A stretch of 64,000 nucleotides of DNA from Macrostomum lignano (lineage: Eukaryota). Shown one piece after another: positions 17,287-63,431 of this stretch (positions are counted from its first letter, which is position 1; every line of letters begins with the position of its first letter). Below the pieces are notes generated by a model. The model was not told the origin of the DNA, ran no database searches, and was given only the letters and a program-made list of their open reading frames with translations. A program made the translations under genes and the position numbers. Location: NCBI GenBank assembly GCA_002269645.1, contig NIVC01001291.1, positions 190,412-254,411 of the forward strand, read 5' to 3'.

Positions 17287-17729
<443 letters not shown>

Positions 17730-21190: not shown

Positions 21191-22071
21191 CCCGATAAAC
21201 AGGCCCTAAAATTTTTTTTTGCGAGCGGCCCTGCGCTCCAGTCTTTAGTGCGGTGCAGACTCCAAAACGGGATGAACTGAACAAAATGTGTTATGAGCTG
21301 AAATCGAGGAAATGGAGAATTTCTGCAATCCGCCAGACTCTACACACTCATTAATATTCCGAAGCACCGATGGAGCACGAAAAGTACACACAAAAAACAT
21401 GCGCAGAGCCGCTGGCCTCTCTTGTTGACAATTAAAAAATCCCAAATATAGTCTTGGGACAGCTGAGTTTGCGGGCTGCCACATCCCAGTGAGAAGTTTT
21501 TCTTCTTCGCTGGGAAAAGTCCTGACGCGAAGGAAAACTGGTGCGCGAGCCTCCTGGGAGTTTGGGAGCGAGCTGCACCCAAAGTGGCCCAGAAACCTAT
21601 CAATCATGCGCCGCTGCCTGTTGAACAATATTGAGAAACTTTTTTCCTTGGAAACTTCTACTAGCTGCAGCTTTCGCTTTCCCGGTGAGCTTGCAGCTTG
21701 CAAGTTGCGCAATTAACTTTTTTTCAAGACAGTCTCAGGGTGCTCCAGAGCTGCTCTCAAAGCGACGCCTGCGAGAAAGGAAGCTTGCAGTTTCTTAGCA
21801 CTAAATTCACAATTTATTATCTTCTGGATTTCCGATTTGCAAATATCGGTGTTTTGTCTAAGGCGCACTCACAAGGCTCAAAATACAGTTCGGTTCCTCT
21901 TAAATGGATTTCGCAAAGATTTGCTTCAATTTGCCCGCTATTTCAAGTTTTTCGATAGTGTTAGAAAAATGTGAACTAATAAATATTCTCAGTTGCCTAC
22001 TGATAAGTCAATCAATTCGGTAGCATAGTTCGCATTTTAATTGAAAATATCGCCTACTATTTTCACCATAG

Positions 22072-23046
22072 AATTCAACGAGCCTGGCGACGGTACCGCG
22101 GCTACCGGGGTGTCAGCGGCGGCATCAGCGCGAGCAGCCGCTGCTGGCCGATCGATCAGGAGGCGGCCGAGGAGGAGGTGGCCCAGCGAACCCTGGCCAC
22201 TTCCGGCTACATGACCGCCAGCATCAGCAGCTGCTTCAGCAGCGACATCATGCGCAACTCCAACTCCTTCAGCGACTGGATGCGCGTCTCCGCCTCCAAC
22301 ACCGAGGACAACCTGGGCGGCGCTGCGGCCAGCGACGTTCCAACGGCGGCCTCGGCAACTCCGCTGCGCAGCCGCCGACTGGAACAGCTGAAAGAGGCTG
22401 ACTCGCTCTCCATCATGTCTGACTGCTCCGAGCTCATGGGCGAGGTCGGCAAGCTGATGAAGGAGCAGCTGGCCAGCCAGGACGCCCTGCTCCGGCCCAA
22501 GCTGCACCCCCAGCGTCGCCACCGACTCCGACGTCGTCGTGGACGCTGCAGCCGACGTCCTCGACGACTTCCTCGCCGCAGCGTCGAGCTCAACAGCCGG
22601 CGTCGTCGTTGCGCGGTGACGGCGGCGGCGGTGCCTCTCAGCCGGAAGACCCGCAGGAGGCGGCCGAGGAGGCCAGGCGGGAGGAGCGGAAGGCCAACCT
22701 GCTCAGCCTGGCGCAGGAGTTCGCCGAGCTGAAGCGGCGCAACGCCCGCGCCCTGCCGTTTAACCTGCACCGGCTGGGTTGCGCCGGCTCCGAGGATGAG
22801 GACGACGAGGATGATGAAGACGGCACCGCGGGCGATAAGGCTGGAGATGCTGAACAAGGTGAAGAAACGACTGGCGAGACCTACAGCCTGGTGCCGGTGC
22901 CGCTGACCATGCTGACTGCGCCGGAGGCTCGCGAGCAGCGGCAGCAGCGGCTGGCGGGTCTCTTCGCTGCCGGGCACGGCTCGCTAACTGCCGCGGCAGC
23001 TGGAGCTGCTGCCGATGGCGAGTCGGCAGCTGTGCCGCTGAGGAGG
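22072..23046 (+). CDS. IQ-motif-containing exon (IQCJ-like), probable upstream part of the SCHIP1 gene; one apparent 1-bp frameshift at the C5 run 22507-22511
   Basis: Acceptor TTTCACCATAG|22072 (phase 2). It reads IQRAWRRYRGYRG...EAAEEEVAQRTL...KEQLASQDALLRPKLH. Adding one C joins this to P/S/T-rich sequence and to ORF 22609-23082 (EEARREERKANLLSLAQEFAELKRR...RQQRLAGLF...VPLRR). A strong donor AGG|GTGAGT lies at 23047 (phase 0); without splicing the frame stops at TGA 23080-23082. Confidence 0.7.
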
Positions 23047-24399
23047 GTGAGTTCGGCGGAGAGCAGGCCTGGTGGGGACTGAGGAACTGGGGTCAATACT
23101 CATTTTAAAACCTATTTTCTTATGATACTACTGTTGCTTATTCCTACAGTAGTGCAAACTGGGATAAGCGTTTTCAACTATTTTAGGGAGATTTCTGTTT
23201 AAAGAAATTTTGCAATCAATAACTTCTCGGCTATTTTTGGTGCACTGAATCGACTATGGCAAGAATATTAATGAAAAATTTTCAACACAATTGGTTCTCA
23301 ACCGCCTGAGAAGCTTAGTAAATCTTTTCCTTCAAGCCTTGCCGACCGTGCTTGAACCCTAAAGTATAGACCCCCCCCCATGGGATCCGACTGTCTGAGT
23401 CGCTGTTGCATCTTCCAACTTGCGAAAAAATAGGGAATATTTTCGTCCCTCCAAGGACCGACGGAGCTGGAGAAGGAAGAGAATTTCTGAGCGCCCGTAC
23501 AGTTAACTGAATTGCTGCAATAGAAGAGGTTTGATCTATCTCTCCCACTATGGGGCGAGCTGCGATGGCATTTCCCTAGAAACTTTTTCTCAGCCTTGGT
23601 TCCCGTTGCAGCCGACGGGGCAAAAAAAAACTGAGACGGAGAAGGAAGCGACCAAGGACTGCAGATCCTCGCGCACACAAAATTGCATTGCGATATCCGA
23701 CAGGGCGGCTGCGCATGCCGCATCCGATGCCGCTGCTTTTTTGGCCCCTCCAAAGTTCCAGTGAGCCCGGAACTGTTTATCAATTCATAATCCGCAGCCG
23801 CTTCGCTTTCTGCACTGCTTCTTCTACTTATCTTATATTCTTTCTGCTTGGCAATATCTGGGAGTGTGAAGCCCAATGTCTGGATTTCTCTCTTCAGATT
23901 TCTCCATTCCGGATTCCAGGCCAAGAACTCCACGTCTCCCGCATTCATTTCTGTTGAATTCTTGTGGAACACTGAGCTACGGATGCCCAGTAAGCGCAAC
24001 AAGTTTCAACCATTTTTCCACTTCCCTAAAAAGTTCCAAGGAACCGACGAAACTTCCTAATCAGCATCGAAGGCTGGCCCAGACGCGGCCGCCATCAAGC
24101 GTGCATAAACTTCCCTCTCTCTCTAGGCCGCAACAACCGGCCTTCACCCGCTCCGCTCCCCTCATTCAGTTTCGTTAGCAAACTCGTCTTTCTCCCCAAT
24201 AATAATCTCGACCCCTGATCCCCATGCTCTTTCTCTTCTCCGCCCGCCGAATCCCCGGCCGGCCAAGCTGCTCCTCCCCTCCAAATCTCCCCGATCGCTG
24301 CGACAGACATAAAAGTAGCAGCAGGATGCGCGGCTTGGCCAGCTTTCCCTCCGACCGGCCGCCCGCCCGCCTGTCCGCTCGCTGCCTGGGCTGCCTGCC

Positions 24400-32490: not shown

Positions 32491-34404
32491 ATGCTTTCTA
32501 ACACACGAAGCATGGAATCGGCAGAAGCGGCGCTGGCTGCTCTGGTCGATGACGACCCTGACGCCTTCATGCGAGCTTTGAAGCCGGACCTGTCGGGAAG
32601 GCTCGCCCAGCCTCTGGTCGACGTGACCGAAAGCCACGAGATCCGGTGTCGCTTGCCGAGAAGTCGCCGAAAGTGGGGCTTCGTCAGTCTGCAGTTCGGA
32701 TACGCGATCCACCTGGCGATTCTGCTGCAGTCCGTGCGAGTGTTCGAGGCTCTGTTGGAAGACAGCTCCGAGCACGCGGCTCAGCTCGAGCTCGACGGCA
32801 GCACCGTTGTACACAGTCTGGCTCGCTGCCAGATGTACGCGCCGAGGTTCAAGCGAGCCAAGCGTCTGGAGACGGCGCTCCTCTCGACGCTGAGTAGAGA
32901 GCCTCGTCTGCTAGACAGGCTGGTCACTCAGGAGGACTCGAGCGGTCTCCGACCTCTGGAGGCGTGCGTGAAGTTCGCTGCATTCCGACTGGCCCGCAAG
33001 ATGTTGCACCTGCCGAACTACCTGTTGAAATCGGAGACTCGATCCGGCGGCTGGGCCGTCTGTCTCTACGACCTCACCGACTACGACCTGTGTCACGGGA
33101 GCCGGTGCAACTCGAGTCCTCTGCACCTGCTCACCTATGTAGCGTCGAGTCAGGTCGAGTCGCTCAAGAAGTCCAAGCTGATGGAGGACCCTCTCATCCG
33201 ACAGTGGCTTCGGTTGACTAACCGTCAGACTCGAGCGATCACATTTCTGAGGCTGCTGGTGATGAGCGTTCCAACATCGGTATTTCTTCTTACAGCCGTG
33301 AACGAATCAATCATGCTGACGGTGGCCTGTTTTGGCAACCTCATTCACTGCAACCGAGCAACATTTTCTGCTGCAAAATCATTAGGATACAATGCGAGCG
33401 TTTTGAGCAATTTAACCATTTATTTTACGTTCTTTTATCAGCAAAAAATAAAGTCAAAAAGCTGTGCAGAATTTCTTCAATCCATCGACATAAACTTTCT
33501 GGTGATTAGTCTCGTGACTGCCTTCATGTGCGTCACTGCGGCTCTGAAGACTGGATTCTCTGCGCTTGAACACGAAAATAAGAAAAAAATATTGACTGCG
33601 GACAACTGGTCGCTGCTTGACAGATTTGTTCGACGGGCCATCTTTGATTTTTATCACTTTGTTGCAATCGCGAGTGGCATCTGCTTTCTAGTTGTCGCGA
33701 CGTTCCTGAGGTCCGATAATTTCTATGAAAATTTGTATCCAAGCGACCAGAGCAACGGTAGAGCTGTGGAGCAACTGTTCATTGGGTCCAACACTCTCTT
33801 CATCGCGTTCACGCTGCTACACTTTGCGCAGTACATGGAGATCGTGACGAAGTCGGTCGGGAAGCTCTTCTTCACCTTCCACTGCATGCTGTCCAGCTTC
33901 CTGGCCGCGCTGCCGCTGCTGTTCTACTGGATCATTCTCTTCAGCCTGGACTTCTTCATCTTGGTTGACTCGCCCGACTTCGAGACCGGCCTGTTGTCGC
34001 TCTACTCGTCGGTCAAGGTCATCCTCAACATGATCACCTTCAGCTTGGACAGCGTGATGGTTCTCATCATCCACGTGCTGTTCTTCGTGTTTGTGGGCCT
34101 CAACCTGCTGAACTTTCTCATCGCGTTCGTCACGGAGACGTTCCAGCGGTGCATCAGTGACTTCGATGTGGCCTTCGACCTGCTGCGACTTCTGACAGCG
34201 TTGAAGACGTTTCGGTACTTCGGGTTCGTGTTTCGGTGCAAGCACTGGCTCGAGGTGAGGTCTCACGGCAGCTGTAGACGGCGGGTTATCGTTGAGGTTG
34301 TTCAACCGGTGTTCAAGAGGCTGTACTCGAAAAGTGAATTCAAGCGGAAGCAGCAAAATTTTAGATCCTGTAGTCGAGAAATGGAATCTTTGCCGGATAT
34401 TTAA
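32491..34404 (+). CDS. TRPV-like cation channel, type A copy 1 (intact, 637 aa)
   Basis: Degenerate ankyrin repeats (DGSTVVHSLA; DSSGLRPLEAC), TRPV linker LYDLTDYD, six hydrophobic segments, pore helix ending ILNM, and S6 LNLLNFLIAFVTETF typical of TRPV LNMLIALMGET. Confidence 0.85.
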   Translation: MLSNTRSMESAEAALAALVDDDPDAFMRALKPDLSGRLAQPLVDVTESHEIRCRLPRSRRKWGFVSLQFGYAIHLAILLQSVRVFEALLEDSSEHAAQLELDGSTVVHSLARCQMYAPRFKRAKRLETALLSTLSREPRLLDRLVTQEDSSGLRPLEACVKFAAFRLARKMLHLPNYLLKSETRSGGWAVCLYDLTDYDLCHGSRCNSSPLHLLTYVASSQVESLKKSKLMEDPLIRQWLRLTNRQTRAITFLRLLVMSVPTSVFLLTAVNESIMLTVACFGNLIHCNRATFSAAKSLGYNASVLSNLTIYFTFFYQQKIKSKSCAEFLQSIDINFLVISLVTAFMCVTAALKTGFSALEHENKKKILTADNWSLLDRFVRRAIFDFYHFVAIASGICFLVVATFLRSDNFYENLYPSDQSNGRAVEQLFIGSNTLFIAFTLLHFAQYMEIVTKSVGKLFFTFHCMLSSFLAALPLLFYWIILFSLDFFILVDSPDFETGLLSLYSSVKVILNMITFSLDSVMVLIIHVLFFVFVGLNLLNFLIAFVTETFQRCISDFDVAFDLLRLLTALKTFRYFGFVFRCKHWLEVRSHGSCRRRVIVEVVQPVFKRLYSKSEFKRKQQNFRSCSREMESLPDI

Positions 34405-36045: not shown

Positions 36046-37984
36046 TTATTGCCTTTTAAAAGCCGGTTGAACAACTTCAACGACCACCCGACGTCTGCAG
36101 ATGCCATGAGATCTCACTTCTAGCCAGTGATTGCACCGGGGTACAAACTTAAAGTACCGAAACGTCTTCAGCGCTGCCAGAAGCCGCAGCAGGTCGAACG
36201 CCACGTCGAAATCGCTGATGCACCGCTGGAACGTCTCTGTGACAGACGCTATGAGAAAGTTCAACAGGTTGATGCTGACAAACATAAAGAATGCGAAATG
36301 AATAATGAGAACGATGGAACTGTCTAGGTTGAAGTTGATCATGTTCAGTATGACTCTCACGGATGAATACAAAGATAGAGAACCAGTGCTAAAGTCTTGC
36401 GTGTCAACCAGGATGAAGAAAATCAAGCTAAACAAAATTATCCAAAAGTAAAGCAGAGGCATGGAAGCCAGGAAACTTGTCATCATGCTGTGAAATATGA
36501 AAAACAGTTTCCCAATGCCTCTTGATACAATCTCCAAATACTGGGAATACTGCAAGAGAACGGATGCGATAAATAAAGCATTCGAGCCGAGAAACAGCTG
36601 CTCAGTGACCCAGTGACCGCTGGTTGATGGGGAGCAGTGTCCGGTACCACCCTGAGTAGTTCGCCCAAAAGTTGGTGAACAGAACAACTAGGAAGCAGGA
36701 GCTGCTGCCAATAGTTACTGCCAGGTAAACGTCGAACATGGTTCTACGGACGAATCGGTGCGTGGGTCGCCAGTTGTCGGCTGTGAGAAGCTTCATCCGC
36801 TGACTCCGCTCCAGGAGCCGCAGAACAATCTTCACGCAGGCTACGATGACTTTGAAGACCAGAACCGCAAAAATCACACAGGTGTTTACAAATATTGCCT
36901 CGCCGATTCTTGAGCACTTAGTCTGCTTAACTGTCTGATCATTAAACACTTTCCAAAAGAGGGTTGAGTTCAACAACACGGTCTCATTGAAGCCTAGCTT
37001 CTCTGCGGCTGTGAAGGTGGCTTGATTACAGTGAATCAGCAAACCAAAACTTGATACAAGTAGCATTACATATTGGCTAAACACCGTCAACAAAAATGCT
37101 GCTGGCGGTATGCCCATCACCAACAGCCTCAGAAATGTGATCGCTCGAGTCTGACGGTACGTCAACCGAAGCCACTGTCGGATGAGAGGGTCCTCCATCA
37201 GCTTGGACTTCTTGAGTGACTCGACCTGACTCGACGCTACATAGGTGAGCAGGTGCAGAGGACTCGAGTTGCACCGGCTCCCGTGACACAGGTCGTAGTC
37301 GGAGAGGTCGTAGAGACGGACGGCCCAGCCGCCGGATCGAGTCTCCGATTTCAACAGATAGTTCGGCAGGTGCAACATCTTGCGGGCCAGTCGGAATGCA
37401 GCGAACTTCACGCACGCCTCCAGAGGTCGGAGACCGCTCGAGTCCTCCTGAGTGACCAGCCTGTCTAGCAGACGAGGCTCTCTACTCAGCGTCGAGAGGA
37501 GCGCCGTCTCCAGACGCTTGGCTCGCTTGAACCTCGGCGCGTACATCTGGCAGCGAGCCAGACTGTGTAAAACGGTGCTGCCGTCGAGCTCGAGCTGAGC
37601 CGCGTGCTCGGAGCTGTCTTCCAACAGAGCCTCGAACACTCGCACGGACTGCAGCAGAATCGCCAGGTGGATCGCGTATCCGAACTGCAGACTGACGAAG
37701 CCCCACTTTCGGCGACTTCTCGGCAAGCGACACCGGATCTCGTGGCTTTCGGTCACGTCGACCAGAGGCTGGGCGAGCCTTCCCGACAGGTCCGGCTTCA
37801 AAGCTCGCATGAAGGCGTCAGGGTCGTCATCGACCAGAGCAGCCAGCGCCGCTTCTGCCGATTCCATGCTTTGTTTCCGTTCCCGAATCATGTTTGCACT
37901 TTTTGGTGCCTTCTGCTGCGTTTCGATTTGCTTTAAAATTTCTCGCATACCGAAGTCAGCCAGAAGTGTTTTATCTGCGTCCAC
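36046..37984 (-). pseudogene. TRPV-like channel type B copy 1, frameshifted (net -2 bp near 36613)
   Basis: Split into ORFs 36602-37984 and 36046-36687. It has CCCAGTGACCGC where intact B2/B3 have CCCAGCCAGACCGC. Confidence 0.8.
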
Positions 37985-38755
37985 TATATTTGCCTTTCCA
38001 CTTTGAAACAGTGTAAGAGAATAAGAGTCATGGTCTATGAGAACCGCTCCCTGGCCTTCAGCCCGTCTGTCAGTAGCCCAGCTGACTTCCCAAACGGCTC
38101 TGAATGCAGTGCTCCCCTGAATTCCTGGGCAACCCCTGGGCGTTGTCTTCCTATTTAGACTTGAGTTTAGCAGCTGTCCTCTCAGGCGCTCCAGTTGAAC
38201 GGGTCCGATATTCAGTTTTAAACTCGTATTAGTCTCGAGCTATTGAATGAGTTCGTTTTCAAATTTAAAGTAGAATTTACCACTAACACACATCGGCTTC
38301 GTCGAAAGTTACTAGGATCTGGAGACAGAAATACAATATGCTTTATCACTCAATCGAAAGTGTTGTATTGATGGTTGTCTCGGGGTGGTTTGGTAGGTCT
38401 TCAGAATCCCATCGCTGCCACCAATGTTGTACCTGTGCTACCTACTCGGACAGCGCCAGCACAGTTAAATTGACTTTTCGTCCTTTTGATCGGGAGTCTT
38501 CAATCGTAGCGTAGCTAGTGCTGCCACCAGTTCCTTCAGGTCTCGGCTTTCGATGAGGTGGGCTTCCCGTCGGAACAAAATAAACAAGTAAACGAACTCA
38601 GCACCGCGTGCAGATTTGAAGATTAACGAACAAGGCGTCTGGTCAGCAGATCCAGCTGGGCCCAGTGGGTGGTTGGGAAGGCGATGTAGGCCTCCTTTAG
38701 ACTTGGGCGTCTATGTTTAGTCAGGCGTATTACAGACGGAAACATGGTAGCAGAA

Positions 38756-38962
38756 GAACTGAAACTGAAAGTGAAATCCTTGACGGAAACAAGGGTGAGG
38801 GGGCCCCGTACATATATGCTGGGAATCCCCATTGCACCATTGTGCGCCAGATAGCGTGACTCAGTATCTATTTTTAGAACTGACGTCACCTCCCGCCTTT
38901 GAGAAGGCCGGGGTCGTGATCCCCGTAAACACAGGCCAGCGAGTGTAGTAAACATGTTTACT
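38756..38962. promoter_or_regulatory. Motif cluster at the centre of the divergent B1/A2 spacer (IRF-, kB-, AP-1-, CRE- and Forkhead-type)
   Basis: GAAACTGAAAGTGAAA 38761-38776; GGGAATCCCC 38821-38830; TGACTCA 38857-38863; TGACGTCA 38881-38888; GTAAACA 38925-38931; palindrome AGTAAACATGTTTACT 38947-38962. Function is inferred from motif matches only. Confidence 0.5.
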
Positions 38963-39755
38963 CCAGGACTCCAGGACTTTTGGACTCCAGGAAAACACGG
39001 CTTTTCATGTGACTTGCTCAAATGACAGAGGAAAACAGGACCACCAATAGTGACCTCAAGACTGGAGTAAAAGGAAGAGCAGACCACAGCACAGATGTCC
39101 ATGGCTGCAAACACGGCTTGGAGATTGGAGCTCGTAGACAAGTTTTCGTCGGTTTTTAAAACAGTCAAGAAATTTGTTGCTAGACTTGAGCTATTGCCAG
39201 TTCCCTTGATTGAATCTTGATTATCGAGATTTAAACTTAAATTTGCATGCTAAAAAGCTCAAATACGGAGATGCCTTTCTGGAACCGGATCGTTACTCAA
39301 TTCAACGGCTAAAAAATTCAACCATAGTTTTTAATATCATATACGTGCAAATTTTTGCTGGAGAGCCGTTGCTTTTCAGACTGGCTCCCAAAAAAGTTCC
39401 ACTGCAATAGAGACTCAGGCTATGCAGAAATGAGTTACATAGCACTATTGGGCTACTTTCTTCGTCAAATCAATTCATTTGATAATGTTGTTTGCTCTGC
39501 GCCCTCGAGACCATACCAAGGACAACTAAGGACCATACTTGCCTGACTGTATCGCCAGAACTGACTCTAGTTCAGTGGCCTTTGTTTGTTCAGGCTGGTC
39601 AAATGTTTTGGAGAAAAATGTACACTTGTGACCAGCGATTCCCTGTATATTGATTTGCTGGCAGCTATACTTTGCAAAGCTCATAAAAGCAGCGCACCAG
39701 AAAACTAACAGAGATCGGACTGATTCTGCGGCAAACTGTTCAGCTGCACAAAGTA

Positions 39756-41773
39756 ATGGGCGAAGGGATCCCGGCTACTAACGACTTTATCAGAGTTCGC
39801 TCCAGCAACAGAATTTCACTTCTTGCAGGTAATCGGGTGCTGCCGAGTCAGAACGATACAAACTTGAAAGAGTTGTTCAACATGGAATCAGCAGAGGCGG
39901 CGCTGGCTGCTCTGGTCGATGACGACCCTGACGCCTTCATGCGAGCTTTGAAGCCGGACCTGTCGGGAAGGCTCGCCCAGCCTCTGGTCGACGTGACCGA
40001 AAGCCACGAGATCCGGTGTCGCTTGCCGAGAAGTCGCCGAAAGTGGGGCTTCGTCAGTCTGCAGTTCGGATACGCGATCCACCTGGCGATTCTGCTGCAG
40101 TCTGTGCGAGTGTTCGAGGCTCTGTTGGAAGACAGCTCCGAGCACGCGGCTCAGCTCGAGCTCGACGGCAGCACCGTTGTACACAGTCTGGCTCGCTGCC
40201 AGATGTACGCGCCGAGGTTCAAGCGAGCCAAGCGTCTGGAGACGGCGCTCCTCTCGACGCTGAGTAGAGAGCCTCGTCTGCTAGACAGGCTGGTCACTCA
40301 GGAGGACTCGAGCGGTCTCCGACCTCTGGAGGCGTGCGTGAAGTTCGCTGCATTCCGACTGGCCCGCAAGATGTTGCACCTGCCGAACTATCTGTTGAAA
40401 TCGGAGACTCGATCCGGCGGCTGGGCCGTCCGTCTCTACGACCTCACCGACTACGACCTGTGTCACGGGAGCCGGTGCAACTCGAGTCCTCTGCACCTGC
40501 TCACCTATGTAGCGTCGAGTCAGGTCGAGTCGCTCAAGAAGTCCAAGCTGATGGAGGACCCTCTCATCCGACAGTGGCTTCGGTTGACGTACCGTCAGAC
40601 TCGAGCGATCACATTTCTGAGGCTGTTGGTAATGAGCGTTCCAACATCGGTATTTCTTCTCACAGCCGTGAACGAATCAATCATGCTGACGGTGGCCTGT
40701 TTTGGCAACCTCATTCACTGCAACCGAGCAACATTTTCTGCTGCAAAATCATTAGGATTCAATGCCAGCGTTTTGAGCAATTTAACCATTTATTTTAAGT
40801 TTTTTTATCAGCAAAAAATAAAGTCAAAAAGCTGTGCAGAATTTCTTGAATCCGTCGACATAAACTTTCTGGTGATTAGTCTCGTGACTGCCTTCATGTG
40901 CGTCACTGCGGCTCTGAAGACTGGATTCTCTGCGCTTGAACACAAAAATAAGAAAAAATATTGACTGCGGACAACTGGTCGCTGCTTGACAGATTTGTTC
41001 GACGGGCCATCTTTGATTTTTATCACTTTGTTGCAATCGCGAGTGGCATCTGCTTTCTAGTTGTCGCGACGTTCCTGAGGTCCGATAATTTCTATGAAAA
41101 TTTGTATCCAAGCGACCAAAGCAACGGTAGAGCTGTGGAGCAACTGTTCATTGGGTCCAACACTCTCTTCATCGCGTTCACACTGCTGCACTTTGCGCAG
41201 TACATGGAGATCGTGACGAAGTCGGTCGGGAAGCTCTTCTTCACCTTCCACTGCATGCTGTCCAGCTTCCTGGCCGCGCTGCCGCTGCTGTTCTACTGGA
41301 TCATTCTCTTCAGCCTGGACTTCTTCATCTTGGTCGACTCGCCCGACTTCGAGACCGGCCTGTTGTCGCTCTACTCGTCGGTCAAGGTCATCCTCAACAT
41401 GATCACCTTCAGCTTGGACAGCGTAATGGTTCTCATCATCCACGTGCTGTTCTTCGTGTTTGTGGGCCTCAACCTGCTGAACTTTCTCATCGCGTTCGTC
41501 ACGGAGACGTTCCAGCGGTGCATCAGCGACTTCGATGTGGCCTTCGACCTGCTGCGACTTCTGACAGCGTTGAAGACGTTTCGGTACTTCGGGTTCGTGT
41601 TTCGGTGCAAGCACTGGCTCGAGGTGAGGTCTCACGGCAGCTGTAGACGTCGGGTTATCGTTGATGTTGTTCAACCGGTGTTCAAGAGGCTGTACTCGAA
41701 AAGTGAATTCAGGCGGAAGCAGCGAAATTTTAGATCCTGTAGTCGAGAGATGGAATCTTTGCCGGATATTTAA
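39756..41773 (+). pseudogene. TRPV-like channel type A copy 2, 1-bp frameshift in an A-run
   Basis: A6 at 40953-40958 versus A7 at 33583-33589 in A1; split into ORFs 39756-40964 and 40961-41773. Confidence 0.78.
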
Positions 41774-43408: not shown

Positions 43409-45349
43409 TTATTGCCTTTTAAAAGCCGGTTGAACAACTTCAACGACCACCCGACGTCTGCAGATGCCATGAGATCTCACTTCTAGCCAGTGATTGCACC
43501 GGGGTACAAACTTAAAGTACCGAAACGTCTTCAGCGCTGCCAGAAGCCGCAGCAGGTCGAACGCCACGTCGAAATCGCTGATGCACCGCTGGAACGTCTC
43601 CGTGACAGACGCTATGAGAAAGTTCAACAGGTTGATGCTGACAAACATAAAGAATGCGAAATGAATAATGAGAACGATGGAACTGTCTAGGTTGAAGTTG
43701 ATCATGTTCAGTATGACTCTCACGGATGAATACAAAGATAGAGAACCAGTGCTAAAGTCTTGCGTGTCAACCAGGATGAAGAAAATCAAGCTAAACAAAA
43801 TTATCCAAAAGTAAAGCAGAGGCATGGAAGCCAGGAAACTTGTCATCATGCTGTGAAATATGAAAAACAGTTTCCCAATGCCTCTTGATACAATCTCCAA
43901 ATACTGGGAATACTGCAAGAGAACGGATGCGATAAATAAAGCATTCGAGCCGAGAAACAGCTGCTCGGTGACCCAGCCAGACCGCTGGTTGATGGGGAGC
44001 AGTGTCCGGTACCACCCTGAGTAGTTCGCCCAAAAGTTGGTGAACAGAACAACTAGGAAGCAGGAGCTGCTGCCAATAGTTACTGCCAGGTAAACGTCGA
44101 ACATTGTTATACGGACGAATCGGTGCGTGGGTCGCCAGTTGTCGGCTGTGAGAAGCTTCATCCGCTGACTCCGCTCCAGGAGCCACAGAACAATCTTCAC
44201 GCAGGCTACGATGACTTTGAAGACCAGAACCGCAAAAATCACACAGGTGTTTACAAATATTGCCTCGCCGATTCTTGAGCACTTAGTCTGCTTAACTGTC
44301 TGATCATTAAACACTTTCCAAAAGAGGGTTGAGTTCAACAACACGGTCTCATTGAAGCCTAGCTTCTCTGCGGCTGTGAAGGTGGCTTGATTACAGTGAA
44401 TCAGCAAACCAAAACTTGATACAAGTAGCATTACATATTGGCTAAACACCGTCAACAAAAATGCTGCTGGCGGTATGCCCATCACCAACAGCCTCAGAAA
44501 TGTGATCGCTCGAGTCTGACGGTACGTCAACCGAAGCCACTGTCGGATGAGAGGGTCCTCCATCAGCTTGGACTTCTTGAGTGACTCGACCTGACTCGAC
44601 GCTACATAGGTGAGCAGGTGCAGAGGACTCGAGTTGCACCGGCTCCCGTGACACAGGTCGTAGTCGGAGAGGTCGTAGAGACGGACGGCCCAGCCGCCGG
44701 ATCGAGTCTCCGATTTCAACAGATAGTTCGGCAGGTGCAACATCTTGCGGGCCAGTCGGAATGCAGCGAACTTCACGCACGCCTCCAGAGGTCGGAGACC
44801 GCTCGAGTCCTCCTGAGTGACCAGCCTGTCTAGCAGACGAGGCTCTCTACTCAGCGTCGAGAGGAGCGCCGTCTCCAGACGCTTGGCTCGCTTGAACCTC
44901 GGCGCGTACATCTGGCAGCGAGCCAGACTGTGTAAAACGGTGCTGCCGTCGAGCTCGAGCTGAGCCGCGTGCTCGGAGCTGTCTTCCAACAGAGCCTCGA
45001 ACACTCGCACGGACTGCAGCAGAATCGCCAGGTGGATCGCGTATCCGAACTGCAGACTGACGAAGCCCCACTTTCGGCGACTTCTCGGCAAGCGACACCG
45101 GATCTCGTGGCTTTCGGTCACGTCGACCAGAGGCTGGGCGAGCCTTCCCGACAGGTCCGGCTTCAAAGCTCGCATGAAGGCGTCAGGGTCGTCATCGACC
45201 AGAGCAGCCAGCGCCGCTTCTGCCGATTCCATGCTTTGTTTCCGTTCCCGAATCATGTTTGCACTTTTTGGTGCCTTCTGCTGCGTTTCGATTTGCTTTA
45301 AAATTTCTCGCATACCGAAGTCAGCCAGAAGTGTTTTATCTGCGTCCAC
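43409..45349 (-). CDS. TRPV-like cation channel, type B copy 2 (intact)
   Basis: 646-aa ORF; same N-terminal block as type A, diverged TM region, S6 INLLNFLIASVTETF. First ATG near 45313; a pyrimidine-rich acceptor-like site lies just upstream. Confidence 0.85.
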   Translation of the reverse strand: MDADKTLLADFGMREILKQIETQQKAPKSANMIRERKQSMESAEAALAALVDDDPDAFMRALKPDLSGRLAQPLVDVTESHEIRCRLPRSRRKWGFVSLQFGYAIHLAILLQSVRVFEALLEDSSEHAAQLELDGSTVLHSLARCQMYAPRFKRAKRLETALLSTLSREPRLLDRLVTQEDSSGLRPLEACVKFAAFRLARKMLHLPNYLLKSETRSGGWAVRLYDLSDYDLCHGSRCNSSPLHLLTYVASSQVESLKKSKLMEDPLIRQWLRLTYRQTRAITFLRLLVMGIPPAAFLLTVFSQYVMLLVSSFGLLIHCNQATFTAAEKLGFNETVLLNSTLFWKVFNDQTVKQTKCSRIGEAIFVNTCVIFAVLVFKVIVACVKIVLWLLERSQRMKLLTADNWRPTHRFVRITMFDVYLAVTIGSSSCFLVVLFTNFWANYSGWYRTLLPINQRSGWVTEQLFLGSNALFIASVLLQYSQYLEIVSRGIGKLFFIFHSMMTSFLASMPLLYFWIILFSLIFFILVDTQDFSTGSLSLYSSVRVILNMINFNLDSSIVLIIHFAFFMFVSINLLNFLIASVTETFQRCISDFDVAFDLLRLLAALKTFRYFKFVPRCNHWLEVRSHGICRRRVVVEVVQPAFKRQ

Positions 45350-46120
45350 TATATTTGCCTTTCCACTTTGAAACAGTGTAAGAGAATAAGAGTCATGGTC
45401 TATGAGAACCGCTCCCTGGCCTTCAGCCCGTCTGTCAGTAGCCCAGCTGACTTCCCAAACGGCTCTGAATGCAGTGCTCCCCTGAATTCCTGGGCAACCC
45501 CTGGGCGTTGTCTTCCTATTTAGACTTGAGTTTAGCAGCTGTCCTCTCAGGCGCTCCAGTTGAACGGGTCCGATATTCAGTTTTAAACTCGTATTAGTCT
45601 CGAGCTATTGAATGAGTTCGTTTTCAAATTTAAAGTAGAATTTACCACTAACACACATCGGCTTCGTCGAAAGTTACTAGGATCTGGAGACAGAAATACA
45701 ATATGCTTTATCACTCAATCGAAAGTGTTGTATTGATGGTTGTCTCGGGGTGGTTTGGTAGGTCTTCAGAATCCCATCGCTGCCACCAATGTTGTACCTG
45801 TGCTACCTACTCGGACAGCGCCAGCACAGTTAAATTGACTTTTCGTCCTTTTGATCGGGAGTCTTCAATCGTAGCGTAGCTAGTGCTGCCACCAGTTCCT
45901 TCAGGTCTCGGCTTTCGATGAGGTGGGCTTCCCGTCGGAACAAAATAAACAAGTAAACGAACTCAGCACCGCGTGCAGATTTGAAGATTAACGAACAAGG
46001 CGTCTGGTCAGCAGATCCAGCTGGGCCCAGTGGGTGGTTGGGAAGGCGATGTAGGCCTCCTTTAGACTTGGGCGTCTATGTTTAGTCAGGCGTATTACAG
46101 ACGGAAACATGGTAGCAGAA

Positions 46121-46327
46121 GAACTGAAACTGAAAGTGAAATCCTTGACGGAAACAAGGGTGAGGGGGCCCCGTACATATATGCTGGGAATCCCCATTGC
46201 ACCATTGTGCGCCAGATAGCGTGACTCAGTATCTATTTTTAGAACTGACGTCACCTCCCGCCTTTGAGAAGGCCGGGGTCGTGATCCCCGTAAACACAGG
46301 CCAGCGAGTGTAGTAAACATGTTTACT
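46121..46327. promoter_or_regulatory. Second copy of the divergent-spacer motif cluster
   Basis: Same motifs at a +7365 offset (for example TGACGTCA at 46246). Confidence 0.5.
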
Positions 46328-47120
46328 CCAGGACTCCAGGACTTTTGGACTCCAGGAAAACACGGCTTTTCATGTGACTTGCTCAAATGACAGAGGAAAA
46401 CAGGACCACCAATAGTGACCTCAAGACTGGAGTAAAAGGAAGAGCAGACCACAGCACAGATGTCCATGGCTGCAAACACGGCTTGGAGATTGGAGCTCGT
46501 AGACAAGTTTTCGTCGGTTTTTAAAACAGTCAAGAAATTTGTTGCTAGACTTGAGCTATTGCCAGTTCCCTTGATTGAATCTTGATTATCGAGATTTAAA
46601 CTTAAATTTGCATGCTAAAAAGCTCAAATACGGAGATGCCTTTCTGGAACCGGATCGTTACTCAATTCAACGGCTAAAAAATTCAACCATAGTTTTTAAT
46701 ATCATATACGTGCAAATTTTTGCTGGAGAGCCGTTGCTTTTCAGACTGGCTCCCAAAAAAGTTCCACTGCAATAGAGACTCAGGCTATGCAGAAATGAGT
46801 TACATAGCACTATTGGGCTACTTTCTTCGTCAAATCAATTCATTTGATAATGTTGTTTGCTCTGCGCCCTCGAGACCATACCAAGGACAACTAAGGACCA
46901 TACTTGCCTGACTGTATCGCCAGAACTGACTCTAGTTCAGTGGCCTTTGTTTGTTCAGGCTGGTCAAATGTTTTGGAGAAAAATGTACACTTGTGACCAG
47001 CGATTCCCTGTATATTGATTTGCTGGCAGCTATACTTTGCAAAGCTCATAAAAGCAGCGCACCAGAAAACTAACAGAGATCGGACTGATTCTGCGGCAAA
47101 CTGTTCAGCTGCACAAAGTA

Positions 47121-49138
47121 ATGGGCGAAGGGATCCCGGCTACTAACGACTTTATCAGAGTTCGCTCCAGCAACAGAATTTCACTTCTTGCAGGTAATCG
47201 GGTGCTGCCGAGTCAGAACGATACAAACTTGAAAGAGTTGTTCAACATGGAATCAGCAGAGGCGGCGCTGGCTGCTCTGGTCGATGACGACCCTGACGCC
47301 TTCATGCGAGCTTTGAAGCCGGACCTGTCGGGAAGGCTCGCCCAGCCTCTGGTCGACGTGACCGAAAGCCACGAGATCCGGTGTCGCTTGCCGAGAAGTC
47401 GCCGAAAGTGGGGCTTCGTCAGTCTGCAGTTCGGATACGCGATCCACCTGGCGATTCTGCTGCAGTCTGTGCGAGTGTTCGAGGCTCTGTTGGAAGACAG
47501 CTCCGAGCACGCGGCTCAGCTCGAGCTCGACGGCAGCACCGTTGTACACAGTCTGGCTCGCTGCCAGATGTACGCGCCGAGGTTCAAGCGAGCCAAGCGT
47601 CTGGAGACGGCGCTCCTCTCGACGCTGAGTAGAGAGCCTCGTCTGCTAGACAGGCTGGTCACTCAGGAGGACTCGAGCGGTCTCCGACCTCTGGAGGCGT
47701 GCGTGAAGTTCGCTGCATTCCGACTGGCCCGCAAGATGTTGCACCTGCCGAACTACCTGTTGAAATCGGAGACTCGATCCGGCGGCTGGGCCGTCTGTCT
47801 CTACGACCTCACCGACTACGACCTGTGTCACGGGAGCCGGTGCAACTCGAGTCCTCTGCACCTGCTCACCTATGTAGCGTCGAGTCAGGTCGAGTCGCTC
47901 AAGAAGTCCAAGCTGATGGAGGACCCTCTCATCCGACAGTGGCTTCGGTTGACGTACCGTCAGACTCGAGCGATCACATTTCTGAGGCTGTTGGTAATGA
48001 GCGTTCCAACATCGGTATTTCTTCTCACAGCCGTGAACGAATCAATCATGCTGACGGTGGCCTGTTTTGGCAACCTCATTCACTGCAACCGAGCAACATT
48101 TTCTGCTGCAAAATCATTAGGATTCAATGCCAGCGTTTTGAGCAATTTAACCATTTATTTTAAGTTTTTTTATCAGCAAAAAATAAAGTCAAAAAGCTGT
48201 GCAGAATTTCTTGAATCCGTCGACATAAACTTTCTGGTGATTAGTCTCGTGACTGCCTTCATGTGCGTCACTGCGGCTCTGAAGACTGGATTCTCTGCGC
48301 TTGAACACAAAAATAAGAAAAAATATTGACTGCGGACAACTGGTCGCTGCTTGACAGATTTGTTCGACGGGCCATCTTTGATTTTTATCACTTTGTTGCA
48401 ATCGCGAGTGGCATCTGCTTTCTAGTTGTCGCGACGTTCCTGAGGTCCGATAATTTCTATGAAAATTTGTATCCAAGCGACCAAAGCAACGGTAGAGCTG
48501 TGGAGCAACTGTTCATTGGGTCCAACACTCTCTTCATCGCGTTCACACTGCTGCACTTTGCGCAGTACATGGAGATCGTGACGAAGTCGGTCGGGAAGCT
48601 CTTCTTCACCTTCCACTGCATGCTGTCCAGCTTCCTGGCCGCGCTGCCGCTGCTGTTCTACTGGATCATTCTCTTCAGCCTGGACTTCTTCATCTTGGTC
48701 GACTCGCCCGACTTCGAGACCGGCCTGTTGTCGCTCTACTCGTCGGTCAAGGTCATCCTCAACATGATCACCTTCAGCTTGGACAGCGTAATGGTTCTCA
48801 TCATCCACGTGCTGTTCTTCGTGTTTGTGGGCCTCAACCTGCTGAACTTTCTCATCGCGTTCGTCACGGAGACGTTCCAGCGGTGCATCAGCGACTTCGA
48901 TGTGGCCTTCGACCTGCTGCGACTTCTGACAGCGTTGAAGACGTTTCGGTACTTCGGGTTCGTGTTTCGGTGCAAGCACTGGCTCGAGGTGAGGTCTCAC
49001 GGCAGCTGTAGACGTCGGGTTATCGTTGATGTTGTTCAACCGGTGTTCAAGAGGCTGTACTCGAAAAGTGAATTCAGGCGGAAGCAGCGAAATTTTAGAT
49101 CCTGTAGTCGAGAGATGGAATCTTTGCCGGATATTTAA
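47121..49138 (+). pseudogene. TRPV-like channel type A copy 3, same 1-bp frameshift as copy 2
   Basis: A6 at 48318-48323; split into ORFs 47121-48329 and 48326-49138. Confidence 0.78.
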
Positions 49139-50773: not shown

Positions 50774-52816
50774 TTATTGCCTTTTAAAAGCCGGTTGAAC
50801 AACTTCAACGACCACCCGACGTCTGCAGATGCCATGAGATCTCACTTCTAGCCAGTGATTGCACCGGGGTACAAACTTAAAGTACCGAAACGTCTTCAGC
50901 GCTGCCAGAAGCCGCAGCAGGTCGAACGCCACGTCGAAATCGCTGATGCACCGCTGGAACGTCTCCGTGACAGACGCTATGAGAAAGTTCAACAGGTTGA
51001 TGCTGACAAACATAAAGAATGCGAAATGAATAATGAGAACGATGGAACTGTCTAGGTTGAAGTTGATCATGTTCAGTATGACTCTCACGGATGAATACAA
51101 AGATAGAGAACCAGTGCTAAAGTCTTGCGTGTCAACCAGGATGAAGAAAATCAAGCTAAACAAAATTATCCAAAAGTAAAGCAGAGGCATGGAAGCCAGG
51201 AAACTTGTCATCATGCTGTGAAATATGAAAAACAGTTTCCCAATGCCTCTTGATACAATCTCCAAATACTGGGAATACTGCAAGAGAACGGATGCGATAA
51301 ATAAAGCATTCGAGCCGAGAAACAGCTGCTCGGTGACCCAGCCAGACCGCTGGTTGATGGGGAGCAGTGTCCGGTACCACCCTGAGTAGTTCGCCCAAAA
51401 GTTGGTGAACAGAACAACTAGGAAGCAGGAGCTGCTGCCAATAGTTACTGCCAGGTAAACGTCGAACATTGTTATACGGACGAATCGGTGCGTGGGTCGC
51501 CAGTTGTCGGCTGTGAGAAGCTTCATCCGCTGACTCCGCTCCAGGAGCCACAGAACAATCTTCACGCAGGCTACGATGACTTTGAAGACCAGAACCGCAA
51601 AAATCACACAAGTGTTTACAAATATTGCCTCGCCGATTCTTGAGCACTTAGTCTGCTTAACTGTCTGATCATTAAACACTTTCCAAAAGAGGGTTGAGTT
51701 CAACAACACGGTCTCATTGAAGCCTAGCTTCTCTGCGGCTGTGAAGGTGGCTTGATTACAGTGAATCAGCAAACCAAAACTTGATACAAGTAGCATTACA
51801 TATTGGCTAAACACCGTCAACAAAAATGCTGCTGGTGGTATGCCCATCACCAACAGCCTTAGAAATGTGATCGCTCGAGTCTGACGGTACGTCAACCGAA
51901 GCCACTGTCGGATGAGAGGGTCCTCCATCAGCTTAGACTTCTTGAGCAACTCGACCTGACTCGACGCTACATAGGTGAGCAGGTGCAGAGGACTCGAGTT
52001 GCACCGGCTCCCGTGACACAGGTCGTAGTCGGTGAGGTCGTAGAGACGGACGGCCCAGCCGCCGGATCGAGTCTCCGATTTCAACAGATAGTTCGGCAGG
52101 TGCAACATCTTGCGGGCCAGTCGGAATGCAGCGAACTTCACGCACGCCTCCAGAGGTCGGAGACCGCTCGAGTCCTCCTGAGTGACCAGCCTGTCTAGCA
52201 GACGAGGCTCTCTACTCAGCGTCGAGAGGAGCGCCGTCTCCAGACGCTTGGCTCGCTTGAACCTCGGCGCGTACATCTGACAGCGAGCCAGACTGTGTAC
52301 AACGGTGCTGCCGTCGAGCTCGAGCTGAGCCGCGTGCTCGGAGCTGTCTTCCAACAGAGCCTCGAACACTCGCACGGACTGCAGCAGAATCGCCAGGTGG
52401 ATCGCGTATCCGAACTGCAGACTGACGAAGCCCCACTTTCGGCGACTTCTCGGCAAGCGACACCGGATCTCGTGGCTTTCGGTCACGTCGACCAGAGGCT
52501 GGGCGAGCCTTCCCGACAGGTCCGGCTTCAAAGCTCGCATGAAGGCGTCAGGGTCGTCATCGACCAGAGCAGCCAGCGCCGCTTCTGCCGATTCCATGCT
52601 TTGCTTCCTTTCCCGAATCATGTTTGCACTTTTTGGCTCTTTCTGCTGCGTTTCGATTTGCTTTAAAATTTCTCGCATACCGAAGTCAGCCAGAAGTGTT
52701 TTATCTGCGTCCACTATATTTGCCTTTCCACTTTGAAACAGTGTAAGAGAATAAGAGTCATGGTCTATGAGAACCGCTCCCTGGCAGACAGACAGAAATA
52801 CAATATGCTTTATCAC
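50774..52816 (-). CDS. TRPV-like cation channel, type B copy 3 (intact)
   Basis: 680-aa ORF. The extra N-terminal 34 aa arise from a deletion in the spacer and are probably not the true start. The body is nearly identical to B2. Confidence 0.85.
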   Translation of the reverse strand: MIKHIVFLSVCQGAVLIDHDSYSLTLFQSGKANIVDADKTLLADFGMREILKQIETQQKEPKSANMIRERKQSMESAEAALAALVDDDPDAFMRALKPDLSGRLAQPLVDVTESHEIRCRLPRSRRKWGFVSLQFGYAIHLAILLQSVRVFEALLEDSSEHAAQLELDGSTVVHSLARCQMYAPRFKRAKRLETALLSTLSREPRLLDRLVTQEDSSGLRPLEACVKFAAFRLARKMLHLPNYLLKSETRSGGWAVRLYDLTDYDLCHGSRCNSSPLHLLTYVASSQVELLKKSKLMEDPLIRQWLRLTYRQTRAITFLRLLVMGIPPAAFLLTVFSQYVMLLVSSFGLLIHCNQATFTAAEKLGFNETVLLNSTLFWKVFNDQTVKQTKCSRIGEAIFVNTCVIFAVLVFKVIVACVKIVLWLLERSQRMKLLTADNWRPTHRFVRITMFDVYLAVTIGSSSCFLVVLFTNFWANYSGWYRTLLPINQRSGWVTEQLFLGSNALFIASVLLQYSQYLEIVSRGIGKLFFIFHSMMTSFLASMPLLYFWIILFSLIFFILVDTQDFSTGSLSLYSSVRVILNMINFNLDSSIVLIIHFAFFMFVSINLLNFLIASVTETFQRCISDFDVAFDLLRLLAALKTFRYFKFVPRCNHWLEVRSHGICRRRVVVEVVQPAFKRQ

Positions 52817-53222
52817 TCAATCGAAAGTGTTGTATTGATGGTTGTCTCGGGGTGGTTTGGTAGGTCTTCAGAATCCCATCGCTGCCACCAATGTTGTACC
52901 TGTGCTACCTACTCGGACAGCGCCAGCACAGTTAAATTGACTTTTCGTCCTTTTGATCGGGAGTCTTCAATCGTAGCGTAGCTAGTGCTGCCACCAGTTC
53001 CTTCAGGTCTCGGCTTTCGATGAGGTGGGCTTCCCGTCGGAACAAAATAAACAAGTAAACGAACTCAGCACCGCGTGCAGATTTGAAGATTAACGAACAA
53101 GGCGTCTGGTCAGCAGATCCAGCTGGGCCCAGTGGGTGGTTGGGAAGGCGATGTAGGCCTCCTTTAGACTTGGGCGTCTATGTTTAGTCAGGCGTATTAC
53201 AGACGGAAACATGGTAGCAGAA

Positions 53223-53429
53223 GAACTGAAACTGAAAGTGAAATCCTTGACGGAAACAAGGGTGAGGGGGGCCCGTACATATATGCTGGGAATCCCCATT
53301 GCACCATTGTGCGCCAGATAGCGTGACTCAGTATCTATTTTTAGAACTGACGTCACCTCCCGCCTTTGAGAAGGCCGGGGTCGTGGTCCCCGTAAACACA
53401 GGCCAGCGAGTGTAGTAAACATGTTTACT
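53223..53429. promoter_or_regulatory. Third copy of the divergent-spacer motif cluster
   Basis: TGACGTCA 53348-53355 and palindrome 53414-53429; all motifs intact. Confidence 0.5.
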
Positions 53430-54198
53430 CCAGGACTCCAGGACTTTTGGACTCCAGGAAAACACGGCTTTTCATGTGACTTGCTCAAATGACAGAGGAA
53501 AACAGGACCACCAATAGTGACCTCAAGACTGGAGTAAAAGGAAGAGCAGACCACAGCACAGATGTCCATGGCTGCAAACACGGCTTGGAGATTGGAGCTC
53601 GTAGACAAGTTTTCGTCGGTTTTTAAAACAGTCAAGAAATTTGTTGCTAGACTTGAGCTATTGCCAGTTCCCTTGATTGAATCTTGATTATCGAGATTTA
53701 AACTTAAATTTGCATGCTAAAAAGCTCAAATACGGAGATGCCTTTCTGGAACCGGATCGTTACTCAATTCAACGGCTAAAAAATTCAACCATAGTTTTTA
53801 ATATCAATATATGAGCACCTTTTTGCTGGAGAGCCGTTGCTCTTCAGAGTGGCTCCCAAAAAGTTTCGCTGCAATAAACTCAGGCTATGCAGAAATAAGT
53901 TACATAGCATTATTAGGCTACTTTCTTCGCCAAATCAATTCATTTGATAATGTTGTTTGCTCTGCGCCATCGAGACCATACCTGCCTGACTTTATCGCTA
54001 GAACTGACTCTAGTTCAGTGGCCTTTGTTTGTTCAGGCTGGTCAAATGTTTTGGAGAAAAATGTACACTTGTGACCAGCGATTCCCTGTATATTGATTTG
54101 CTGGCAGCTATACTTTGCAAAGCTCATAAAAGCAGCGCACCAGAAAACTAACAGAGATCGGACTGATTCTGCGGCAAACTGTTCAGCTGCACAAAGTA

Positions 54199-56121
54199 AT
54201 GGGCGAAGGGATCCCGGCTACTAACGACTTTATCAGAGTTCGCTCCAGCAACAGAATTTCACTTCTTGCAGGTAATCGGGTGCTGCCGAGTCAGAACGAT
54301 ACAAACTTGAAAGAGTTGTTCAACATGGAATCAGCAGAGGCGGCGCTGGCTGCTCTGGTCGATGACGACCCTGACGCCTTCATGCGAGCTTTGAAGCCGG
54401 ACCTGTCGGGAAGGCTCGCCCAGCCTCTGGTCGACGTGACCGAAAGCCACGAGATCCGGTGTCGCTTGCCGAGAAGTCGCCGAAAGTGGGGCTTCGTCAG
54501 TCTGCAGTTCGGATACGCGATCCACCTGGCGATTCTGCTGCAGTCCGTGCGAGTGTTCGAGGCTCTGTTGGAAGACAGCTCCGAGCACGCGGCTCAGCTC
54601 GAGCTCGACGGCAGCACCGTTGTACACAGTCTGGCTCGCTGCCAGATGTACGCGCCGAGGTTCAAGCGAGCCAAGCGTCTGGAGACGGCGCTCCTCTCGA
54701 CGCTGAGTAGAGAGCCTCGTCTGCTAGACAGGCTGGTCACTCAGGAGGACTCGAGCGGTCTCCGACCTCTGGAGGCGTGCGTGAAGTTCGCTGCATTCCG
54801 ACTGGCCCGCAAGATGTTGCACCTGCCGAACTATCTGTTGAAATCGGAGACTCGATCCGGCGGCTGGGCCGTCTGTCTCTACGACCTCACCGACTACGAC
54901 CTGTGTCACGGGAGCCGGTGCAACTCGAGTCCTCTGCACCTGCTCACCTATGTAGCGTCGAGTCAGGTCGAGTCACTCAAGAAGTCCAAGCTGATGGAGG
55001 ACCCTCTCATCCGACAGTGGCTTCGGTTGACGTACCGTCAGACTCGAGCGATCACATTTCTGAGGCTGCTGGTGATGAGCGTTCCAACATCGGTATTTCT
55101 TCTCACAGCTGTGAACGAATCAATCATGCTGACGGTGGCCTGTTTTGGCAACCTCATTCACTGCAACCGAGCAACCTTTGCCGCCGCTTTTCGGGCAGGC
55201 TACAACACATCGTCTCTTTCCAACACGACGCTGTACCATGAGATTTTTAACAGCCAGTCGGTAAAGAATTATAGTTGCGGTGAATTATTTGACTCGATGC
55301 TTTTGAGCTATTTAATGATAACATTTGTCTCCGTGTTTCATATGGTCATTATGCTCATCAAGTTGGTGCTCTATTTTGTTGAGTGCCAGCGAAAGATAAG
55401 GACTGTGGCGCCCATCGACAGCTCAACTGGGCGCTTTGTGCGCCGCTCGACTTTTGATTTCTATCAGGCGGTGGCTTTCGTAAGCGGCATCAGCTTTTTT
55501 ATATTCGCTTCAGCACTGCAACTAAAAAATTTTTATGAATACTTTGAGCCAAGAGGTGTAATGGAACAGCTTTTAATTGGGTCCAACACTCTCTTCATCG
55601 CGTTCACGCTGCTGCACTTTGCGCAGTACATGGAGATCGTGACGAAGTCGGTCGGGAAGCTCTTCTTCACCTTCCACTGCATGCTGTCCAGCTTCCTGGC
55701 CGCGCTGCCGCTGCTGTTCTACTGGATCATTCTCTTCAGCCTGGACTTCTTCATCTTGGTCGACTCGCCCGACTTCGAGACCGGCCTGTTGTCGCTCTAC
55801 TCGTCGGTCAAGGTCATCCTCAACATGATCACCTTCAGCTTGGACAGCGTGATGGTTCTCATCATCCACGTGCTGTTCTTCGTGTTTGTGGGCCTCAACC
55901 TGCTGAACTATCTCATCGCGTTCGTCACAGAGACGTTCCAGCGGTGCATCAGCGACTTCGATGTGGCCTTCGACCTGCTGCGACTTCTGACAGCATTGAA
56001 GACGTTTCGGTACTTCGGGTTCGTGTTTCGGTGCAAGCACTGGCTCGAGGTGAGGTCTCACGGCAGCTGTAGACGTCGAGTGGTCGTCGAGGTTACTCAT
56101 CCGGTTTTCAAGAAGTTTTAA
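54199..56121 (+). CDS. TRPV-like cation channel, type C (intact, 640 aa): A-like N-terminus and S5-S6, unique S1-S4 segment and tail
   Basis: Near-identical to type A up to ~55171 and from ~55577 to ~56077; distinct sequence in between and a short B-length C-terminus (THPVFKKF*). Confidence 0.87.
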   Translation: MGEGIPATNDFIRVRSSNRISLLAGNRVLPSQNDTNLKELFNMESAEAALAALVDDDPDAFMRALKPDLSGRLAQPLVDVTESHEIRCRLPRSRRKWGFVSLQFGYAIHLAILLQSVRVFEALLEDSSEHAAQLELDGSTVVHSLARCQMYAPRFKRAKRLETALLSTLSREPRLLDRLVTQEDSSGLRPLEACVKFAAFRLARKMLHLPNYLLKSETRSGGWAVCLYDLTDYDLCHGSRCNSSPLHLLTYVASSQVESLKKSKLMEDPLIRQWLRLTYRQTRAITFLRLLVMSVPTSVFLLTAVNESIMLTVACFGNLIHCNRATFAAAFRAGYNTSSLSNTTLYHEIFNSQSVKNYSCGELFDSMLLSYLMITFVSVFHMVIMLIKLVLYFVECQRKIRTVAPIDSSTGRFVRRSTFDFYQAVAFVSGISFFIFASALQLKNFYEYFEPRGVMEQLLIGSNTLFIAFTLLHFAQYMEIVTKSVGKLFFTFHCMLSSFLAALPLLFYWIILFSLDFFILVDSPDFETGLLSLYSSVKVILNMITFSLDSVMVLIIHVLFFVFVGLNLLNYLIAFVTETFQRCISDFDVAFDLLRLLTALKTFRYFGFVFRCKHWLEVRSHGSCRRRVVVEVTHPVFKKF

Positions 56122-63311: not shown

Positions 63312-63431
63312 CTAGAGGGCAATTTTAGTCTTTTAAGGCTTTGCTTCAAGGACTCTTAGAAGTTAATGTGTTGACATTGTCGGTTTCCAACAGAGAAGCG
63401 CATGAATGCGACACATCAGCATCGATGCTAC

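Follow-up and report, generated by a model that had tools for sequence, protein, structure and literature searches.

What role, if any, is played by a dense cluster of transcription factor consensus sites that lies between two ion-channel genes of the flatworm Macrostomum lignano? The window analysed here, a 64,000-nucleotide stretch of contig NIVC01001291.1, contains such a cluster in a block of 207 bp (copy 1, 38756-38962), midway between two back-to-back TRPV-like ion-channel genes. The original prediction, made from the sequence, described the block as an enhanceosome-like cluster at the midpoint of a bidirectional promoter, written in the innate-immune grammar of vertebrate enhancers, and suggested that the two channels are co-induced by infection, wounding or stress. 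Our analysis indicates that the cluster is real, unusually dense and rightly placed for a shared control region, and that the block is probably an ordinary region of this kind; the immune reading fared less well.

Reading of the sequence between 37700 and 40100, combined with a regex scan, recovered every motif that had been listed. The triplet GAAACTGAAAGTGAAA (38761-38776, + strand) carries three GAAA cores in a 6-bp phase (38761, 38767 and 38773) and is of the ISRE/IRF type, while being near a PRDM1-type site too; the pattern GAAANNGAAA has just two further matches in the window outside the block copies. The kappaB-type decamer GGGAATCCCC at 38821, which fits GGGRNNYYCC and is confined in the window to the three block copies, abuts the imperfect C/EBP-like string ATTGCACCAT at 38831, which by manual count agrees with the C/EBP palindrome ATTGCGCAAT in 8 of its 10 positions (38821-38840 together, + strand, regex scan). 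The TRE/AP-1 site TGACTCA (38857-38863) and the CRE TGACGTCA (38881-38888) lie in the left and right arms, respectively, of an imperfect inverted repeat, GTGACTCAGT-N13-ACTGACGTCAC (38856-38889), with an AT-rich loop, ATCTATTTTTAGA, and arms that pair in the computed fold. Because they are the arms of a single inverted repeat, these two sites constitute one structural unit and are not independent. A Forkhead core, GTAAACA, was found by the regex scan at 38925-38931 (+ strand), and two opposed Forkhead cores (GTAAACA at 38948 and TGTTTAC at 38955) form the perfect 16-bp palindrome AGTAAACATGTTTACT (38947-38962). Immediately 3' of this palindrome there is a short direct repeat that was absent from the original list, ACTCCAGG, present three times on the + strand (38960-38991, with starts at 38960, 38968 and 38984) and again at the equivalent places of block copies 2 and 3 (46325-46356 and 53427-53458). 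One extra copy occurs at 31881, 630 bp upstream of the first gene of the array, and the repeat unit is one mismatch away from a STAT-type TTCCNGGAA site.

The block belongs to a tandem array with a period of 7365 bp, in which seven gene copies are spread over 32.5-56.1 kb, with three head-to-head spacers among them. Two inverted arms, 36926-37868 and 39881-40823, bear ORFs on opposite strands and represent head-to-head genes; the divergent ORFs are intronless, about 610 codons long, and complementary to each other at 91% over the first 943 nt. The family has 163 distant relatives at 22-30% identity, and no close relatives were found in protein collections by exact look-ups of two ORFs or by a word-indexed protein search. 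The family profile matched TRPV6 with E=1.5e-39 (profile positions 86-562), and an AlphaFold model (pLDDT 76.6) aligned over its full length with TRPV6, TRPV5, TRPV3 and TRPV1 in Foldseek (TM 0.55-0.61). The flanking genes combine an ankyrin-repeat N-terminus with a six-helix pore domain in the TRPV fold, and the earlier designation of the pair as channels is borne out by both profile and model. Free-living flatworms, M. lignano among them, are known to have TRPV homologues (PMC5196486).

Of the seven channel copies, three are broken by frameshifts. These include both genes around block copy 1, namely the - strand gene at 36046-37867, which has an intact counterpart at 43409-45235, and the + strand gene at 39882-41773, which has intact copies at 32512-34404 and 54325-56121; the third is the + strand copy at 47247-49138. 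Both split + strand copies break at the same A-run (...KNKKKY*). The frameshifted copies could be either pseudogenes or homopolymer assembly errors. On a second contig, NIVC01003797.1, the channel ORFs (19006-24080) carry no gene call in the GenBank record, and the family appears to be unannotated. Given the missing gene call, the absence from protein collections and the frameshifts, there is no sign of channel expression under standard conditions, which is compatible both with genes that are silent until induced and with genes that are not functional. The seven ORFs (32512-56121) share a near-identical N-terminal stretch of 315 codons and differ in having three different S1-S4 regions and two pore types. 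The picture resembles a homogenised ankyrin part combined with a modularly varied transmembrane part.

Each of the three head-to-head spacers contains exactly one block, and the block occurs nowhere else within the 64-kb window. Spacer 1 extends between two start codons from 37868 to 39881 (2012 bp excluding the flanking bases, 37869-39880), and spacers 2 and 3 occupy 45234-47245 and 52599-54323. Block copy 2 (46121-46327) is 100% identical to copy 1, and units 1 and 2 are 99.8% identical over 7365 bp. Block copy 3 (53223-53429) has two substitutions, equivalent to 38804 C>G and 38919 A>G, neither of which touches a named motif, and these are the only two changes in the central 1 kb of its spacer; otherwise this spacer departs from spacer copy 1 mainly by one diverged patch and by deletions of 267 bp and 22 bp. 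Across the array, identity between the window and the Mlig_3_7 contig NIVC01003797.1 is about 99%; the contig has a spacer of the long form, in which the block shows both substitutions of copy 3. The 267-bp segment (38056-38322), which spacer copies 1 and 2 share with the Mlig_3_7 contig and copy 3 lacks, represents an insertion or deletion polymorphism between repeat units. As the block copies are 99-100% identical and reflect one evolutionary event, they say nothing about conservation. That both variant sites miss the motifs is expected by chance in about 4 of 10 cases, since by our own tally about one third of the block bases lie in named motifs, a figure that applies to near-identical copies only. 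Paralogue footprinting was rejected because the copies are too similar to inform. Upstream of gene 1, which is intact (32512-34404), we found no older, diverged version of the block, and this upstream region is unrelated. Within the window and NIVC01003797.1, the block is thus a component of the head-to-head spacers and not a common dispersed repeat.

Elsewhere in the window, satellite DNA occupies about one third of the sequence, within 640-21189, where GC skew is strong; it comprises a 15-bp unit repeated 410 times (640-6817), a 35-bp unit repeated 106 times (11927-15628), (TAGA)n at 17287-17741, and 27-bp and 21-bp arrays. Two 14/29-bp minisatellite arrays (CGACGTTTGCCAGC; 57276-57768 and 58746-59166) are inverted around about 1 kb of unique DNA, an arrangement that resembles a Foldback-type element (57276-59166). 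An ORF at 61088-63349 (- strand), with a cysteine-rich MYND-like zinc-finger stretch, is 97% identical to the M. lignano protein BOX15_Mlig007662g1.

The placement of the block between the two genes supports part of the bidirectional-promoter proposal. The midpoint of the two MESAE start codons, 37867 (- strand) and 39882 (+ strand), is at 38874.5, and the CRE centre is only 10 bp off, confirming its predicted central location. This centrality is not a by-product of spacer symmetry, as the spacer has no internal inverted repeat and is not itself palindromic. In copy 3, the deletions shift the CRE to 113 bp from the midpoint; the central position therefore holds in copies 1 and 2 only and is not a preserved feature. 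Head-to-head genes around a shared region are present as proposed, but the ATGs are 2012 bp apart (1725 bp in copy 3), and block copy 1 lies 889 bp from the ATG of the - strand gene and 920 bp from that of the + strand gene, separated from them by leaders that hold 6 and 12 ATGs. Given these distances and the ATG-filled leaders, the block looks like an upstream module rather than a core promoter. Metazoan bidirectional promoters have divergent TSSs less than 1 kb apart; the flatworm locus shares with them the divergent gene orientation and the common intergenic region, and differs in the distance between the ATGs, the roughly 0.9 kb from the block to each of them, and the abundance of ATGs in the leaders.

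To estimate whether the motif cluster exceeds what random sequence would yield, we scored 207-bp windows for the five main classes, GAAANNGAAA, GGGRNNYYCC, TGASTCA, TGACGTCA and GTAAACA. All other 207-bp windows of the 64 kb have two classes or fewer, and no window in 400 Markov-3 simulations of 30 kb exceeded three. Because this five-class scan is post hoc by construction, we also scored a library of 75 textbook consensus sites, with weights set by how rarely each class occurs in simulated sequence; this library, too, was written after the motifs had been seen. With overlaps allowed, the block scored 16.9, which was reached in 0 of 400 simulations; the simulated maxima had a mean of 9.6 (SD 1.4). 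When only one hit per class was counted, with no overlaps and capped weights, the block scored 12.86, which was reached in 3 of 1000 Markov-3 simulations of 30 kb, whereas the next-best real window scored 9.2. Of 1000 simulations, 4 had seven classes within one window. For a 31-site library made up of classic sites, the block scored 12.78, and 0 of 1000 simulations reached this value. Motif density is thus above the Markov-3 background, as measured with a library composed post hoc and after a first-stage scan that is a selection step in itself. The second-best motif windows are GC-rich patches at 34473, 41902 and 49265, in the tail-to-tail spacers between gene 3' ends, which carry kappaB-like, GC-box, CCAAT and CArG-like strings. 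Perfect-palindrome density, an annotation-free count, was ordinary and showed no excess. Within the 2-kb spacer, folding z-scores were negative for both strands only in the block region, 38637-39084 (-1.5 to -3.0), as is typical of short-looped dyads at the DNA level and not of strand-specific RNA.

These statistics bear on one alternative, namely that neutral intergenic DNA happened to contain several short consensus strings and was tripled by a very recent tandem duplication. Single sites are only 7-10 bp long, and a reader who looks for such strings will notice them where they occur. The number of independent events is closer to five than to eight, counting the TRE/CRE inverted repeat and the Forkhead palindrome once each; the corrected p of about 0.003 per 30 kb comes from a library composed after the fact; palindrome density is ordinary; the three block copies count as one event; and the flanking ORFs show no sign of expression. 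Against coincidence speak the 31-site library score, which no simulation attained, and the large distance to the next-best real window. In addition, of about 30 kb of unique sequence, the block falls into the 2 kb where a control region would be expected, and the dyad-symmetry signal coincides with it. Owing to the post-hoc library, the selection step and the near identity of the copies, we regard a chance cluster as still plausible, with perhaps a quarter of the weight on its side. A different origin is conceivable if the block is what remains of a mobile-element promoter or LTR, or if it drives an unannotated transcript within the spacer, having been captured before the array expanded and not regulating the channels. 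Promoters of mobile elements tend to be dense in motifs, the genome of M. lignano is rich in repeats, with satellites taking up a third of the window, a 267-bp indel separates the spacer copies, and an ORF of 181 codons (38623-39168, - strand) spans the block. We consider such an origin unlikely, as the copies are confined to head-to-head spacers in the 64-kb window and NIVC01003797.1, no terminal repeats or target-site duplications surround the block, and the motif arrangement had 0 matches in viral and metagenome contigs. The spanning ORF starts at TTG, and both variant sites alter its amino acids; on these grounds a coding sequence over the block was rejected altogether. A known RNA family was likewise dismissed, as no Rfam match was obtained across the whole window, and the block is not an RNA gene because its hairpins measure 5-10 bp and are equal on both strands.

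The position of the block, its motif excess and its dyad symmetry make a shared upstream cis-regulatory module of the head-to-head, intronless TRPV-like pair the best reading. Those three properties, the presence of the motifs and the identity of the flanking genes are established directly; factor binding, co-regulation and any inducibility at the block are what we infer. The block is kept in all three gene pairs and in the Mlig_3_7 assembly, which favors a module, and the frameshifts in three of the seven gene copies and the intact gene 1 that has no block upstream argue against it; on the sequence evidence we put the chances of a shared module at about even. According to this model, a string of short, dyad-symmetric candidate binding sites located about 0.9 kb from each start codon would serve both genes. 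Dimers of bZIP proteins (CREB/ATF, Jun/Fos) would occupy the TRE/CRE inverted repeat, and Forkhead proteins the three GTAAACA cores. These two families, which to our knowledge are universal in animals, are the most credible occupants of the predicted sites. If the flatworm possesses such factors, a diverged IRF might make use of the triple GAAA, and a divergent Rel-homology protein or NFAT5 of the kappaB-type decamer. One central module could then switch on both genes jointly, as would be fitting if they encode subunits of the same tetrameric channel.

The distance to the start codons could be accommodated by a shared module in two ways: either each gene would have its own proximal core promoter, with the block acting as an upstream enhancer, or the leaders would be removed by splicing. 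A polypyrimidine-AG at 39829, shortly before the + strand ATG, would be compatible with an acceptor site. SL trans-splicing has been described in M. lignano (PMC8629364), and in this species regions of no more than 2 kb upstream of the TSS were enough to obtain faithful tissue-specific reporters (PMC5730564).

Shared central control regions of divergent gene pairs are a familiar kind of feature, as exemplified by the yeast GAL1-GAL10 UAS and the histone H2A-H2B intergenic regions. As in those systems, the flatworm spacer separates a head-to-head pair, in this case paralogues that might assemble into one channel, and has one cluster of candidate activator sites near the intergenic middle, several of the candidate sites being dyad-symmetric and hence orientation-neutral. 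Unlike those systems, the spacer measures 2 kb rather than a few hundred bp, and the pair is tandemly triplicated. If our reading holds, the block would represent a new example of this familiar class.

A more specific function was implied by the original prediction, in which the block acts as a vertebrate-type IRF, NF-kB and ATF/AP-1 innate-immune enhancer that co-induces both channels after infection, wounding or stress. The IFN-beta enhanceosome consists of PRDIV, bound by ATF-2/c-Jun, PRDIII-I, bound by IRFs, and PRDII, bound by NF-kB, as contiguous overlapping sites within about 55 bp that are strictly conserved. The resemblance lies in the co-occurrence of tandem GAAA repeats (38761-38776), a perfect kappaB decamer (38821-38830) and bZIP sites of the TRE (38857-38863) and CRE (38881-38888) type. 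In the flatworm block, however, the sites are non-contiguous and dispersed, with centres 25-57 bp apart over a total span of 207 bp, their order (ISRE, kappaB, TRE, CRE, Fox) differs from that of the IFN-beta enhanceosome, and three Forkhead cores are added. The term enhanceosome-like is therefore not supported, and the arrangement resembles a loose billboard more than an enhanceosome.

The label of innate-immune grammar suits the host poorly as well. In Platyhelminthes, p50/p105 NF-kB is reported to be absent (PMC11432056), and flatworms, with M. lignano among the species checked, have lost several upstream components of the NF-kB pathway (PMC4894443). Planarians retain TBK1, which drives a transcriptional response to wounding or injection, probably through other factors, along with a diverged IRF3/4, seven long-branch proteins with Rel-homology domains and a well-conserved NFAT5, but no clear NF-kB or IRF3 homologue is present, and knock-down left the studied TBK1-dependent response unaffected (PMC13563047). 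Literature directly addressing NF-kB or IRF in Macrostomum was not found. The retained planarian proteins leave some room for an immune function, and the dispersed sites and the missing pathway parts weigh against it; overall, a vertebrate-type immune enhancer seems very improbable. It may be that divergent factors recognise the kappaB-type and GAAA sites, or that nothing does, and induction of the channels by infection or wounding is purely inferential. A variant adapted to the flatworm would be a shared enhancer responsive to stress, wounding or infection, in which a diverged IRF and a long-branch Rel-homology factor or NFAT5 cooperate with bZIP and Forkhead proteins to co-induce two TRPV-like subunits; to this we attach the smallest probability of all. 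If true, it would mean that an IRF-Rel-bZIP combination is used in a phylum that lost canonical NF-kB, and that it is tied to sensory or osmotic channels instead of cytokines.

Stable transgenesis is established in M. lignano, a free-living flatworm (PMC5730564), so a compact module of about 200 bp in a 2-kb divergent spacer is directly testable. An inactive block would caution that vertebrate motif grammar cannot be read by eye off invertebrate DNA. An active block could be used as a small bidirectional or inducible promoter tool, and would offer a first view of the factor families that recognise IRF- and kappaB-type sites in a phylum where canonical NF-kB is missing.
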